Source: Paramoeba atlantica (Eukaryota; Protista; Discosea). From it: a DNA stretch of 64,000 bases. Within the stretch, counting starts at the first letter, position 1; each line of letters opens with the position of its first letter. Of the stretch, positions 1-64,000 are shown one piece after another. The translations under genes were made by a program, and so were the position numbers. Under the pieces are notes generated by a model. That model was not told the origin of the DNA. It saw only the letters and a program-made list of their open reading frames with translations, and made no database searches. The stretch lies in contig CDRNVI010000021.1 of assembly GCA_977017575.1 (NCBI GenBank), positions 682,001 through 746,000 of the forward strand, written 5' to 3'.

Positions 1-450
1 TGTCTCAGACAACTTACCACCTCTTTACACAGCCGGAGGGGTGCACTGCAACCGACCGTTGCATCGGGGTAAGGCGAGGCAGAGCCACGCCCAGTGGCCT
101 TCAAGGAGGGACACAGATGGCGCACAAACACCGATGAACAAAGGTTATTGGTGCACACGTCGGTGAAGACGACGCCGTCATACCAGGATTTTAAACAACA
201 GTCCGGTTTAACGTTCCGGGGGGAAATGATAACGGTTACAGGAATGCTACGTAGCTGCAGGAATGATAACTTTTGAAGATTGTCTTGAGTTTACCGTACG
301 ATTCGTCGACGCAACGGGTTGGTAGCAGCACGTTGTTGCCGCCTTGTACTAACGAAAACAGGTAGAGGACTTCGGCCTCGAAACTTCCAAATCTATCTGT
401 GAAGGGTCTGGCTTGCCAGTGACCGATCGGAGCTATCCGGAATGATTTAG
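1..450 (+). mobile_element. 3' end of a non-LTR retroelement (probable LINE, or another SINE-like family) whose last ~156 bp match the 3' tail of SINE-A
   Basis: 295-450 aligns by eye with 63093-63248 and, inverted, with ~58911-59065 (shared blocks GGTAGAGGAC.TCGGCCTCG, AACTTCCAAATCT.TCTGTGAAGGG.CTGGCTTGCCAGTGACC, CCGGAATGATTT). Upstream of 295 the sequence differs from the SINE. Frame 3 reads SQTTYHLFTQPEGC, loosely like the C-terminal HLFxxC zinc knuckle of LINE ORFs (weak). Confidence 0.6.
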
Positions 451-57640: not shown

Positions 57641-58286
57641 GAGGGTTAGTTTTGGATTTGGTCAAAAAAGAGCCGATAGTTGGGCAAAAATAGGGTTGTT
57701 TTTGCATATTTCCGCTCACATGTGTTTTCCTTCGGTTCGCACGATTTTGAACGAAGCAGGGTGGAGACCTCTTTTTTTGAAAGGCCCTTGAATTCACCCC
57801 GGCTTTTGAAGAAGGGGGGGGCTTTACCTCGTGGATTTACCTCTTCGTTTTGATTCATTTTGTTTACGCCAGGGGTGCAGTTAATGCCATGTCGGAACGC
57901 TTTTCTGACAGTACGTTGGGTATGCACTAATTGAGTCATCAGAAGCATATTTGTTGAATGATCAGGCTAAAAATAGAAGAAGTGATGACTGCAAATGTAG
58001 ATCTGCTATGTAAATGTAAACATTTTTTTAACAAATTTAGTTTCAATTGTATTTATTTGAGTTTAGAAAATGCGAAGTTACAAATACTTACAGAGGATTT
58101 CCGAGACACAAAGTAATACCACAGAAAAACTTTGATGCGACGAATCGTAAACAAAAAACGGTGCTGTGGACGAATTTAAGCCGAAAATTTCTCGTAAGAA
58201 AGGTGTTTTCTTTCCTTCTCCAACCTTCGAATCATGACTTCAAAATTTTAAACCAACTTTCACTTCCAAACGTCTTACACACTTAT

Positions 58287-58628
58287 TCAGAAATTTAAGT
58301 ATCTGTTTCTCTTCTTTTTCCCTTTGAAGTAAACGCTCGATGCGCGCTTCGCTTCTTCCGTAGTGCTAAAACACACGTGCGCCAGTCCCTTTTTTGATAC
58401 GATTGTTATACAATCGATTTCACCATACGAAGCGTAATGCTTGGTAAGGTCTTCTTTAGCCGTAGAGGAGGGAAGGTGTTCTATTGTGATTGAGCGCTCA
58501 TCACGCTCTTCGCGCGCAGAGCGCAAAACGTGTAGAGATTCTAAGTAATCATCTCTTTTGCGCTTTGTATCTCTTTCCTTGTCGGAAATGTCGTTACCAT
58601 TGGTTGATTGATTCTCCGCCGAGGCCAT
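58287..58628 (-). pseudogene. Single-RRM gene or gene fragment (PABPN1-like start of domain)
   Basis: REERDERSITIEHLPSSTAKEDLTKHYASYGEIDCITIVSKKGLAHVCFSTTEEAKRA (RNP2/RNP1-like); the domain seems cut short at its C-terminus. Confidence 0.6.
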
Positions 58629-58712
58629 AGTAAATTCAAAGAAAGTTTTCAAAAAAATCAAGCTGAGTCTAGAAACATTCAACTTAAAAAGCAATACATG
58701 AACGTAGAAGTC

Positions 58713-58896
58713 TTGTTTTTGAAGGGCCTGCCCGGAGGGCCCTTCGAGAGGGTGCAGATCCGCTGCCGCGGGGGGTGCTTTACCTCGTGACATGTAATTT
58801 TGAAGGAAACAAGCTTCTGATATCTTTTTTTGCAGGGCCCGCCCGGAGCGCCCTTCGAGAGGGTACAGGCCCGCTGCCGCGGTGGGTGCTTTTGAA
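58713..58896. repeat. Two copies of a ~110-bp GC-rich direct repeat; the second is the SINE-A target
   Basis: AGGGCC.GCCCGGAG.GCCCTTCGAGAGGGT.CAG..CCGCTGCCGCGG occurs twice; TTTGAAG.AAACAAGCTTCTGA occurs at ~58800 and resumes at ~59341 after the SINE. A degenerate relative lies at ~57775-57835. Confidence 0.8.
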
Positions 58897-59333
58897 AAAA
58901 AAAAAAAAATCCAAATCATTCCGGATTGCTCCGGATGGTCACTGGCAAGCCAGACCCTTCACAGACAGATTTGGAAGTTCCGAGGCCGACGTCCTCTACC
59001 AGTTTCCGCTTGTCCAAGGCGGCACCAACGTGCTGTTGCCAACACGCTGCGTCGACGAACTGTACTTCAACACGGCTTACCCAAGAGGTGTAAGCCGGGT
59101 AAGGGAGCTGGTTCCCTGAGGGGAGGGTCCGGGACGGTCCTCCGAGTACTGGGCCTAGTCGGTTATCAGCCCAGCCTCTTAGAGTGAGGCCGCCGGGAAT
59201 ATTGCGATGAGCGGGTTTGAACTCGCCGTCTGAGCACCATGTGCTTCAAACTTTGAGTTCTTGCCACTCCGCCACTCCTCCCCTTTGCCACTCCGCCACT
59301 CCTCCCCTTTGCCACTCCGCCACTCCTCCCCGC
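58897..59333 (-). mobile_element. tRNA-derived SINE, family A, copy 1
   Basis: Minus strand: A box TGGCGGAGTGG, B box GAGTTCAAACCC, body near-identical to 62876-63260, oligo(T) 3' end; 13-bp TSD GGGTGCTTTTGAA at 58884-58896 and 59334-59346. Confidence 0.9.
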
Positions 59334-62260
59334 GGGTGCTTTTGAAGCAAACAAGCTTCTGAAATTTCGATAAAAAAAATTGAAAGCAATTTTGACGGAG
59401 CGTAATTCTGCAGCCATGATGGGGACATTTTTTTTGGTAGAGGGCGCTTGAGCGTTGGGGTCACTCGCACTTCTTCTGCCGAAGCTGAAGACGCCGGGCT
59501 TGTGACCGGTATCAAGCGTGCTTCCCCCCTAGAGAGGTCTTCCTAAGAAGATCGTTTCAATCTAATTTCTTAGAATTGATAAGTCAAATCGGTAAGCCGA
59601 TTTGCTTTTTCCATGGCCGGAAATTTAGGCCTATGGTAACCTGAAGTCAGGTGTGTTCCTGGGCGATCTGTGCCCATGCCAGGGAGCACTCGAATATCAT
59701 CGAGGCATTGTGCCCTGGATATTGCTACTGTGAGCTTGGCGAGTTCCGGTCTCTTGGACCACGTCCTATCATTCAAGTCAAGAATAACATCGTTCTTCAC
59801 GGTGATACCTTGTACTTTGTGATACGTATAGGCAAATCCCAATTCCACTTGAAAGTTTCCTTGGGAAGCCTTATCATGGTGCTGCGCCTTTTTGGCGTAA
59901 AATTCTACACCTGACCCCTTCTCAATGCATTGCATAAAAGAAGGGGCTTTTCGTAGATAACAGACACCATCAATAGTGTCGTATGACAAATCGTCTGACA
60001 CAAGGTCTCTCATTTCAATCACTGTCCCATTCGCAATTTTCATTGTATAAGGAGCAATGTTCTCGGTGATTACACCGGGTGCTCCTTTTACATACGGAAA
60101 ATGCTTCAGGGTGTGTGTCAATGAGTTTACCTTGGACGTTATCGCCTGTCCATGCGAACAATGGGCAATTGTGGCGTCTGGCAAAATTTCTTGCCATTGC
60201 GACATTAATCTTGTGCCGTTCAATATTTGTTCCAACAAATAACTGAATTTTCTTGGTCCTCAGAGGTAAGAGGTTTTACCAATTGGATGAACTTCTTCAA
60301 CCCCTCATTGGGAGCTTTTCGAAGAAGACGCAAGATATCTGAAAATACAGTATCTTGTCGTGCTCGCATTTGCTGTTTGAGTTCAAACACATACGAGACT
60401 TGAAAAATATTCTCAAAAATGGGATTATTACCAGGAGAGCTATCTTCTATGGTAAGAGACGCTCCTTGTACTGGTCTCAGCTGATAAAAATCTCCCACAT
60501 AGAGCATGTTGATGCCTCCATAGGGAAGCTGCTCATTGCCTTTGATTTGCTGCAACCTAGTGTTGATACAGGAAAGGAAACACTTGCTGATCATTGACAC
60601 TTCGTCGACTATGATTAATCGACATTTCTCATACCTTTGTTGGTATGGTAGAAGGCTACTGCTTGAAAGATGTTTCAAATTTCTTGCAGTAGCCCCTATC
60701 GGTATGCAGAGGGAAGCGTGTATTGTGCAACAGTGCAGTACTGATGCGGCGATCCCAGTGGGCGCCATTGCAATACATTGGCTTCCCAGTTCTTGCATTA
60801 TGAAACGGGAAACTAGACTTTTCCCGGTTCCGGGTCCACCGAGCAGAAACATACATTTCCGCTCGGGGTCTAGTTTCCCGTTTAGTAAATCTTCAGTTTG
60901 ATTTACGCACTGTTTCTGTGCTTGGTTCAGTTCAATGGAACTGTTGTCTTCGCGAAACATGTAGCTGCGATCAAACGTAATCTCTTCGTATTGATTACTG
61001 CGAGCCAGTGGACGATCCTCATTAAAATGAGCTCTGTCCACTTGGCTCAGATTGATCCGAAGTTGCAAATCGTTCGTTTTGGATCATTTCAGCATAGCGC
61101 TCTCGCGCATTTATGACTGAAATATTGGACCTTGTCATTGTCGATAAAAGATCAATATTTTCTTCAGAGGAGTTCTCAGTAGAACCTCCTAACGCGGCCG
61201 TTAAAGCTCGCGTTTGTAGTTCGCAGTATGCATTCTGCTGAACCAATCGCTCTTCATTAACCACTGCAGTATTCTGCTGTGCTTCAAGAGCATCTTGAAG
61301 ATGAGGTTCAACCTCTCGCACTTCAAGCTCATTTTCGTACGCATGTTGCGTGCTAATCTTGCTTCTTCCAGAGTGCAAGCATCTTTGCGTCGATACAAAT
61401 CTGCCGCGTTCTCTGTATTCTTCGAAGCATGTAAAAGCCGAAGAAAGTTGCACATTATGTCATACTTTCCAGGCGTATTTATTTTCGCTTCATTGAGAAG
61501 CTTTTCAAACCCTTCTAGGGTCATTTCATGGCTCGTTGAGCCTTTCGTCCATGGGGAAAACAATGCCACCATGTGTTTCGCTACTCGAAGATGGCTTCGA
61601 GCTCGTGCCCCAGGTTCTTTTGAAGAATTCAATATGGGAAAACCTGGTATAGCTAGAACTGTGTGCAAAGAGCGCAACTGTTGCTCAACAATATCTCCAG
61701 GCTCAAATTCCGGGAGGCCTTCAATGTCCTCAAAGGCGTATCTCCCATTAGCACGACGTCCGCGACGACGTCTTCGATTTGTCCCTGACTCAAAATCTGA
61801 ATCATGATCGGGCTCTTCTTGAGCTAGTTCAGCTCTTTTCTTCTTTACGCTGACAATGCCTGCATAGGAATACAGGTCAAGGTCTTGAAGATCTTCGCCC
61901 CTGTGCATGTAACGCACATGGAGTGGTGCAAGAACTGCACAACCATGTTCGGTGATCATTAGAGGAGCCTCTAAGATACCTTTGTCGAACTCCATATCAG
62001 AGTCTTGTGACGAATCATCGTCACTGATTTCTAGATCTCTGTGATCTGACTCACTTGAGATATTTGCCAGGAACTTCATTACACGGTTCATATTGATCCA
62101 TGTGAAGTTATGGCTCATATACTCGGAGGATTGGCCGAGACAAAAGGCAGTTGCCATTTCGATTGAAACTTCCATCTTTCGATGTGTCTTGTTCGACAAT
62201 TTCTGTAGAACTAAGCGTGCCATCGGAATGTCAGTTTGCACTCTGTGCTCTTAATTCAGA

Positions 62261-62688
62261 CAGACAGACAGAAGACACGGAGGGCTCTGCAGCGCCAACC
62301 GTTAGGGTAGAGCCTCAGGTCACCGACCTTCATTGTCTCCCAGACGGCACTCGACGCCTTGCGGCCCGATAACGGCTACCCAACCGTAGCTACCAGGACG
62401 GGCGCCCAACCCCGTTGCATCGTGTAGGCTGTGTCTCAAGCCTCCTTTGCGTAAGCAGCTCGCAATTTAGCGGCTGCGCTGGAGCCTGGTTCAGCTCGGC
62501 GGTTCCGGGTCGGTCCTCCAGGGGAGCGGGGTTGGGTGTGGGCCTTGAAGGCACTCCTGATCGCTTTCCCTTTGTAGTGAGGCCGCCAGGTTGCGAGTTT
62601 TGTCGATAGCGGGAATCGAACCCACAACCTGCAGGTTGTAAGGCCCACCGTCTAACAACTACGCCCACACCGCCCTGAATTCAGAGCC
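62261..62688 (-). mobile_element. tRNA-derived SINE, family B
   Basis: Minus strand head GGCGGTGTGGGCGTAGTTGTTAGACGGTGGGCCTTACAACCTGCAGGTTGTGGGTTCGATTCCCGCTATCGACA (B box GGTTCGATTCCC), (TCTG)n tail; 13-bp TSD CTCT(T/G)AATTCAGA at 62248-62260 and 62689-62701; removal restores Helitron frame QMALNSEHRVQTDIP. Confidence 0.88.
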
Positions 62689-62875
62689 CTCTGAATTCAG
62701 AGCCATTTGAAGGTGGTTATTGGCTGCGCGAAGTGCTGGTACAATGTACACAGGTGGACCAATGTCCTTGCTCATATATTTTATGAGATATTGCATAATT
62801 TTTATGCCGGGACCTTCGCTCCCAATGAAAACTACACATGTATTGCATCTTACGCAAGCAGTGAGTGTTTCATTG

Positions 62876-63260
62876 GAGCGGAGGTGGCGGAGTGGCAAGA
62901 ACTCAAAGTTTGAAGCACATGGTGCTCAGACGGCGAGTTCAAACTCGCTCATCGCAATATTCCTGGCGGCCTCACTCCAAGAGGCTGGGCTGATAACCGA
63001 CTAGGCCCAGTACTCGGAGGACCGTCCCGGACCCTCCCCTCAGGGAACCAGCTCCCTTACCATGCTTACACCTCTTGGGTAAGCCGTGTTGACGTACAGT
63101 TCGTCAACGCAGCGTGTTGGTAACAACACGTTGGTGCAGCCTTGGAAAAGCGGAAACTGGTAGAGGACGTCGGCCTCGGAACTTCTAAATCTGTCTGTGA
63201 AGGGCCTGGCTTGCCAGTGACCATCCGGAGCGATCCGGAATGATTTGGATTTTTTTTTTG
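62876..63260 (+). mobile_element. tRNA-derived SINE, family A, copy 2
   Basis: A box TGGCGGAGTGG, B box GAGTTCAAACTC, oligo(T) end; perfect 13-bp TSD GAGTGTTTCATTG at 62863-62875 and 63261-63273; removal restores Helitron frame VPYNETLTACVRCN. Confidence 0.92.
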
Positions 63261-64000
63261 GAGTGTTTCATTGTACGGAACGGTGATGGATCCCCGTTTA
63301 GTGTGTTGTGTCGGGTCCTGGTTGTTGCGCAGAAGCACAATCAGAGACCTTTCATCAAGTACTGGGCAAATGGTATCATTTTTAACCGACCGTGTTGGAG
63401 CCTTGAGCCGGAATTCCGGTTGTCCGGATTCATCCATCTTAACCTCAACCTCTCTAACTTCCGTTTCATTTTCATGAAGTACGGATGGAATGCCATATCG
63501 GCATTTGTTCTTGCTAATGTTTCCTTTCATTTTGAAACGCACGGGTCTGTGACCAACGTGCTGCTGAACATCAACAGCACATTTGGCCACATGTTCCCTG
63601 AAATAATCATCCTTTTCATCAGGAATGATATGTAGACCTCCGCGATACATCTTTGAGTAGTCGAGCGTTGCAGGTCCGTAAATCTCCTTACTGATCCTTT
63701 GCGCCCACTCGGGCAGATCAGCGCGCATCGTCGTACCCAAAGACTACCATCGTGCTCCTTCACAATGTGAATTAATTCGGAGACGTAATGTGGACTAAGA
63801 TTCGTCCATAGCACACTATGAAAGTGTAGCGCACCTCTTTTCTGGCATTCTACAACACCAAAAAATGCTCGAGGGCGACCAAAGAGGCCTTCAAGAACGT
63901 CACGTTCCTTCTTTACCTCATCTACATTCGACATTCCGTACAATTCGGTAAGAAGAGTACGGATTTGCCGTTCGAAAATGCTAGTGGATCTGACAGGATT

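Follow-up and report, generated by a model that had tools for sequence, protein, structure and literature searches.

SINE A, a recently active short interspersed element with an RNA polymerase III-type promoter signature and a LINE-like GGA(T)n tail in a genome that looks kinetoplastid

Near the end of a 64,000-nucleotide (nt) stretch of contig CDRNVI010000021.1 (positions 682,001 to 746,000 of the forward strand; assembly GCA_977017575.1, Paramoeba atlantica), which as a whole is termed the window here, two segments of 376 nt (58900-59275 and 62884-63259) form inverted arms with 96% complementarity and represent a single element present in two oppositely oriented copies. They raise the question of what kind of mobile element this is, how its copies are made and why the strand that carries the promoter-like head ends in T rather than A. 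The initial annotation had described two opposite, near-identical insertions, each with an A box, a B box and an exact 13-base-pair (bp) target-site duplication (TSD), and both this description and its coordinates were found to be correct on re-reading. The element is designated SINE A (for short interspersed element); its two copies in the window and their parts are the following.

58884-58896, no strand: left TSD of copy 1, GGGTGCTTTTGAA, 13 bp, exact; the target is single in seven paralogous empty sites
58897-59333, minus strand: SINE A copy 1, 437 nt, with the head at the high-coordinate end
59261-59331, minus strand: head tandem repeat of copy 1, a perfect 3 x 24 nt, giving three A boxes
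59334-59346, no strand: right TSD of copy 1, the second GGGTGCTTTTGAA copy
62863-62875, no strand: left TSD of copy 2, GAGTGTTTCATTG, 13 bp, exact
62876-63260, plus strand: SINE A copy 2, 385 nt, the older copy
62885-62895, plus strand: A box of copy 2, TGGCGGAGTGG
62936-62946, plus strand: B-box-like motif, AGTTCAAACTC in copy 2 and AGTTCAAACCC in the consensus
63224-63239, plus strand: 3' hairpin of copy 2, TCCGGA-GCGA-TCCGGA, with a 6-bp stem and a GNRA loop (GCAA in most copies of the family)
63247-63260, plus strand: tail of copy 2, GGA + T10 + G
63261-63273, no strand: right TSD of copy 2, the second GAGTGTTTCATTG copy

Both window copies are genuine insertions, as proven by seven to ten paralogous empty sites. 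They are nested in one member of a larger Helitron-like repeat, whose other members provide these empty sites and which has the following extent.

~57900-64000 of the window plus positions 1-2555 of locus L067, minus strand: Helitron-like element, host of all three SINE inserts

This host element contains a PIF1 helicase domain (60220-61068), a weak match to Helitron_like_N (63527-63943) and a DUF6570 domain (L067 114-1769), and it has at least 10-14 paralogues with 92-98% identity; to our knowledge, Helitrons have perhaps never been reported in kinetoplastids. The flanks of copy 1 (987 nt on the left, 954 nt on the right) are 10 nt apart in at least seven members (on contigs C52, C43, C41, C47 twice, C109 and C20), which, given the query ends used, means that the 13-nt target is present once. 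The flank alignments of copy 2 overlap by exactly 13 nt in ten members (C43, C41, C52, C34, C82, C109, C62, C50, C100 and C67), so that this target, too, is present once. The closest paralogue, located on contig C32 and 98-99% identical, likewise lacks copy 1 but contains the copy 2 insertion (C32:27110-28359, locus L002, 98% identity). The filled copy 2 site and the missing copy 1 in C32 indicate that copy 2 predates the duplication that gave rise to the C21 and C32 members and that copy 1 is younger. The distances to the family consensus agree with these relative ages, copy 2 showing 14 differences and copy 1 only 2-3 mismatches. The shared copy 2 insertion has decayed unevenly, with 14 consensus differences in the window, 6 in C32 and two common to both, while the flanks are ~98% identical; gene conversion is possibly the cause.

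The third insert in the Helitron-like element, located at 62260-62674 on the minus strand and designated family B, is a second, unrelated SINE-like element. Its head at 62601-62668 is tRNA-like (Rfam tRNA model, 22 bits, E 0.085), its tail is (TCTG)n and its ~13-nt TSD contains a single mismatch. In the paralogue on C43, the interval between the SINE A sites is ~860 nt shorter, consistent with the absence of both copy 1 and the family B insert.

The two copies belong to a family that is dispersed over the source assembly (45.7 Mb, 248 contigs). Searches with 30-nt head and tail patterns, in which up to 2 mismatches were allowed, yielded 253 head and 288 tail matches across contigs as well as 22 ends reading GGAT followed by a non-T base, and the size of the family is about 250-310 copies. 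Some copies are situated inside segmental arrays that repeat in tandem every 1995, 6485 or 5438 bp or, on C88, about every 1.4-2 kb, the arrays being located at C21:765700-781400, C12:136400-163300, C54:730500-752300 and C88:1175-9964; as such arrays inflate the count, independent insertions are somewhat fewer. A consensus of 382 nt was obtained from 43 full-length copies, from which these diverge by 1.9% on average (range 0.3-4.6%), and the family shows subfamily structure. TSDs of 8-14 bp flank 19 of 28 non-redundant copies. The earlier view of a recently active element is supported, SINE A being a dispersed family of ~300 copies with TSDs and a T-rich 3' end. SINE A is non-coding; none of the Rfam families matched it at E≤10, and 26-31-mers from its head and tail had no match in JGI metagenome contigs.

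Which end of the element is the 3' end can be read from its partial copies. Of 24 such copies, 17 have lost the 5' end but run through to the 3' end, starting anywhere between positions 32 and 348, in a set that is enriched for 5'-truncation since 20 of its loci had been selected for having a tail match but no head match. This polarity identifies the T-rich end as the 3' end, where reverse transcription starts. The 5' end of complete copies usually lies at GCGGAGG, 7 nt upstream of the A box, and includes a few additional bases. Copy 1 is longer than the consensus because its first 24 nt are triplicated without a mismatch, and head multiplication was also seen, independently, in loci L028 and L030, with units of 22 and 21 nt, respectively. 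With three independent cases and unequal units, this multiplication of a 21-24-nt segment carrying the A box is probably generated when reverse transcription is at the 5' end. At the opposite end of the window, positions 3-450 hold a member of another non-coding repeat family of ~450 nt (172 candidates at first look, 77-100% identity), which has no tRNA-like head; its last 147 nt are 85% identical to positions 225-371 of SINE A, and the two families thus have a 3' module in common.

The 3' end of the SINE A family has the structure TCCGGA-GCAA-TCCGGA-ATGATTT-GGA(T)n, in which the first T run measures 3-20 nt and, in most copies, is separated from the TSD by additional GGA(T)m units; older copies have GGATT GGA... 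tails. On the head-sense strand, the terminal run consists of 13-15 T in copy 1 (on the plus strand an A run at 58897-58909, then TCC) and 10 T in copy 2. All 53 tails examined were of the GGA(T)n type and a poly(A) tail was found in none of them. The statement of the initial annotation that the element ends in oligo(T) thus holds as far as a T-rich end is concerned, but the tail is GGA(T)n, often repeated, and not a bare T run. The length of the T run decreases with the age of the copy (Spearman -0.37, P=0.006, n=53), being 13-18 and up to 20 nt in the youngest. In 5 of 19 cases the TSD begins with GA, the GGA unit straddling the junction; this count, made post hoc, may point to target-tail microhomology. 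Apart from the terminal run, no stretch of four or more T occurs on the sense strand, and the tRNA genes in a nuclear cluster of the host end in T3-T5; the run would consequently be expected to stop RNA polymerase III (Pol III), and a role as terminator would be compatible with these sequences.

A Pol III promoter is also what the 5' end of SINE A suggests. The window contains five matches to the A-box consensus TRGCNNAGTGG, compared to 0.48 expected, and four of the five are located within the two SINE A copies. In the consensus, the A box TGGCGGAGTGG is perfect and occupies positions 8-18, and the B box AGTTCAAACCC, recognised at the motif level and fitting 10 of 11 consensus positions, follows 38 nt further on, a spacing like that in tRNA genes. 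Counting from GCGGAGG as +1 places the A box at tRNA positions 8-19. Furthermore, positions 76-70 can pair with positions 1-7 to form an acceptor-like stem, a short hairpin is found at the place of a class II variable arm, and a CAA-type loop resembles, by eye, that of the host tRNA-Leu(CAA), in comparison with which ~8 nt of the D and anticodon stems are gone. Judged by its motifs, the SINE A head carries the signature of a type-2 Pol III promoter; its descent from a class II tRNA is plausible, being likely rather than demonstrated.

The question of the machinery that copies SINE A leads to the resident long interspersed elements (LINEs). The genome is rich in non-LTR elements, with 1851 reverse transcriptase (RT) candidates at first look, and two LINE families, which are related to each other and both have endonuclease, RT and RNase H domains, end in a layout similar to that of SINE A. 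One of them has the 3' end ACCGAT-GCAA-ATCGGT + CTTATA + (GGATA)n, of which 25 exact instances were found, many at a distance of 1.6 kb downstream from an RT match; the other ends in GCCGAT-TTAT or GTAA-ATCGGC + CTTTTT + (GGATT)n. Common to SINE A and both LINE families are a 6-bp stem, a 4-nt loop, a spacer of 6-7 nt and GGATN units. When the hairpins of all three are aligned, the five inner pairs are formed in 100% of the sequences, three of them being invariant (CCG...CGG core) and two compensatory. The SINE A 3' end may thus mimic the recognition or start site of this endonuclease/RT/RNase H clade of LINEs. A LINE with an apparently intact open reading frame (ORF) of 1312 amino acids (endonuclease, RT, RNase H) is located just outside the window, at L067 3000-6938 on the minus strand (C21:749000-752938), and ends in a GCAA hairpin with a (GGATA)n tail.

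Candidates for a LINE carrying the SINE A 3' sequence itself were also considered. The 20 sites with a tail and no head, taken as possible ends of a partner LINE, all turned out to be SINE copies, complete or truncated at the 5' end, or else a remnant of 36 nt in another repeat. A SINE-like segment behind the LINE ORF in locus L077 was rejected as the 3' untranslated region of that LINE and is a separate truncated SINE insertion, because 13 other copies of the same LINE end at a (GGTT)n tail ~80 nt earlier. A 26-mer spanning the hairpin and spacer of SINE A was confined to SINE-type ends, and no LINE with the SINE A 3' sequence was found.

Taken together, we consider it probable that SINE A is a Pol III-type SINE, young and non-autonomous, that is copied by resident LINEs and whose tail is a mimic of the LINE tail and likely also a Pol III terminator. 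This reading starts from the observed family, its insertions, TSDs and empty sites, the truncation polarity, the youth of the copies, the structure of the tail and the look-alike hairpin. What it would add is transcription by Pol III, the terminator role of the T run, the descent from a tRNA and the identity of the partner LINE. The 5' 80 nt would provide a type-2 promoter (A and B box) within a decayed frame resembling a class II tRNA, and an RNA of ~382 nt would most likely be transcribed through to the element's own terminal T run. A protein encoded by a LINE of the hairpin-GGATN clade would then bind the hairpin and nick the target, reverse transcription would start on the GGAU(U)n tail, and realignment or slippage at priming would create the variable GGA(T)n repeats. 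Such a process would be expected to leave TSDs of 8-14 bp, frequent 5'-truncation and a few extra 5' nucleotides.

Several results weigh against one part or another of this scheme. With respect to the head, the Rfam tRNA model (E≤10) matched neither copy 2 nor a copy one mismatch from the consensus, ARAGORN found no tRNA in it, and local alignment with 24 distinct tRNAs gave a best score of 29, which is not above shuffled heads (maximum 24.2 +/- 3.4). The top three alignments involve class II tRNA-Ser genes at scores that shuffled heads also reach, and no parental tRNA was significant by any of these three approaches. The designation of the element as tRNA-derived in the initial annotation is therefore unproven, the A and B boxes and the acceptor-like stem being what speaks in its favour. 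With respect to the partner, a Smith-Waterman comparison of SINE A with the 3' 700 nt of the (GGATA)n LINE was no better than with shuffled sequences, none of the 100 listed SINE-type tails was found in the 5 kb that follow any of the 150 best RT loci, and the proposed partnership draws on ~30 nt of 3'-end architecture, without sequence identity. With respect to the tail, the lack of an internal T4 is weakly informative, as ~0.9 such runs are expected by chance, and the T13-20 of the youngest copies exceeds what Pol III termination would leave behind, so that extra steps (slippage or uridylation) must be assumed. In view of this length, and of a GGA(T)n tail and hairpin laid out like the ends of LINEs, the earlier assertion that the copies end at the Pol III terminator goes beyond what has been established.

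The oligo(T) could be a simple-repeat tail of the LINE type that has grown by slippage and takes no part in ending transcription, and this we regard as doubtful. It would account for GGA(T)n units in which n ranges from 1 to 20, for the 22 copies ending in GGAT plus a non-T base, for the resemblance to the GGATA and GGATT pentamers of the resident LINEs and for the concentration of the longest T runs in young copies; however, if Pol III transcribes SINE A, a run of four or more T must terminate it, and the terminal run is the sole one on the sense strand, in a host whose tRNA genes end in T3-T5. A bolder proposal, tentative in our eyes, is that SINE A represents the first lineage of classical SINEs with a Pol III promoter in Kinetoplastea, and possibly the first in Euglenozoa, in which GGAUUUU serves a dual purpose as pentamer unit of the partner LINE and as Pol III terminator. 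If so, each new copy would be a self-contained transcription unit, with an RNA that ends in U and is directly primed on the target, the long T runs seen in newly inserted copies might stem from RT stuttering or from uridylyl transferases, which are abundant in kinetoplastids, and hundreds of dispersed tRNA-like Pol III sites could seed transcription boundaries amid Pol II polycistrons.

Two further explanations concern the origin of the element as a whole. SINE A could be a LINE-dependent retroposon of the trypanosomatid type (like RIME, NARTc and SIDER) that arises from Pol II read-through or processed transcripts, with the A and B boxes and the likeness to tRNA being coincidental. The failure of the tRNA models and the non-significant tRNA alignment of the head would agree with this, as would the family at window 3-450, which shares the 147-nt 3' part (85%) in spite of having no tRNA-like head, and the derivation of the known trypanosomatid short retroposons from autonomous elements (PMC12278014, PMC6681497). 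What makes it improbable is that an 11-nt A box without a mismatch lies exactly 7 nt from a recurrent 5' end, at an expectation of just 0.48 such motifs per 64 kb, with the B box 38 nt on and an acceptor-like stem closing the head, and that similarity to the 3' region of the neighbouring LINE and a poly(A) tail are both missing. Alternatively, the copies could be retro-pseudogenes of a functional, structured Pol III RNA gene of the host of ~380 nt, analogous to 7SL or BC1 derivatives, rather than members of a purely selfish SINE lineage. The predicted fold, which lies well below that of shuffled sequences (z = -3.9 for the whole element, -3.5 for the head), the absence of an internal T4 run and the discrete 5' and 3' ends point in this direction, whereas ~300 near-identical copies with subfamily structure and a LINE-like 3' end do not, nor do the negative searches of Rfam and of the JGI metagenome contigs with head and tail; no conserved syntenic master gene was singled out, and we rate this explanation as very improbable.

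As to the host, the first 44 kb of the window contain a one-directional run of long intron-less ORFs, and the 3' half of a kinetoplastid-type spliced leader (SL) was found at 11 places, ten times as CAGTTTCTGTACTTTGTTG and once as a second, one-mismatch variant, with no control matches. Repeats of the TTAGGG type are present as well, thousands of them having been matched by the reversed control of the LINE-tail pattern search. By these sequence features the host looks like a kinetoplastid-type protist, and the SL-like sequences together with the ORF cluster lend support to the initial annotation, which had suspected a kinetoplastid. In loci L031 and L032 (positions 1487-1520 in both), the 3' part of the SL (...CGATAAAGATACAGTTTCTGTACTTTGTTG) directly precedes coding sequence; these loci are apparently retro-copied trans-spliced mRNAs or SL-headed elements. 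A different composition is found on contigs C143, C144 and C149 (loci L034-L048), the small contigs C108-C133 and C221, which have very AT-rich flanks and many identical tRNA genes followed by T10-T15, and an AT-rich tRNA-Ser-like sequence is repeated on ~14 small contigs. These contigs, which are unlike the window in composition, may come from another organism, an organelle or a virus represented in the assembly.

For such a host, a Pol III-type SINE with ~300 copies would add a class to the known mobile elements of kinetoplastids, which comprise a few retrotransposon clades and their deletion derivatives. The hairpin and GGATN tail with its compensatory stem changes would offer a natural system for the study of template recognition by LINEs, and the absence of copy 1 from a paralogue that is 98-99% identical suggests the use of SINE A copies as insertion-polymorphism markers. 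More speculatively, scattered promoters of the tRNA-like type could influence the organisation of a genome with long polycistrons, the boundaries of which tend to be marked by tRNA genes and Pol III sites.

Among the known systems, the short retroposons of trypanosomatids are closest with respect to the host. RIME, NARTc and SIDER, which are derived from ingi/L1Tc elements, and SIRE are deletion derivatives of their autonomous elements with poly(A) ends, and ingi-clade elements generate TSDs of ~12 bp. SIRE is derived from VIPER (PMC6681497), and a 2025 survey of trypanosomatids and Bodo saltans lists the CRE, INGI, TATE and VIPER clades only (PMC12278014). SINE A shares with RIME, NARTc, SIDER and SIRE the non-autonomous nature, a size of ~0.3-0.6 kb, kinetoplastid hosts (in its case a kinetoplastid-type one) and TSDs, but differs from them by its Pol III-type head, the lack of poly(A) and the lack of similarity to the 3' 700 nt of the LINE compared. 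With the tRNA-derived SINEs of animals, plants and fungi it has in common a short non-coding sequence with 5' A and B boxes, the division into head, body and tail, TSDs and 5'-truncation, hundreds of dispersed young copies and, presumably, the dependence on LINEs; it differs from these in a head that is too decayed for tRNA models and in its kinetoplastid-type host. No paper joining tRNA-derived SINEs with kinetoplastids was found in the literature searched.

The 3' end has its best counterpart in the eel pair UnaL2/UnaSINE1, where a 3' stem-loop is followed by short tandem repeats and apparently forms the recognition and start site (PMC1636434). In both systems the number of tail repeats varies, as predicted for slippage. 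UnaL2 and UnaSINE1, however, have a 3' tail sequence in common, whereas SINE A and the resident LINEs share just the architecture and the CCG...CGG core, with compensatory changes in the stem. The Au SINE of plants has a poly(T)-type tail, and SINE A resembles such poly(T)-tailed SINEs in that the head-sense strand ends T-rich and not in poly(A), but its T run stands within GGA(T)n units that match the LINE pentamers and is preceded by a GNRA hairpin. As poly(T) is among the recognised tail types of SINEs in general (PMC8825457), a T tail by itself is not new; as regards the suggestion that the element is possibly undescribed, no such element appears in the papers searched. SINE A is a real, recently active SINE of a kind that is well known, in a host group that, as far as checked, is new for it.

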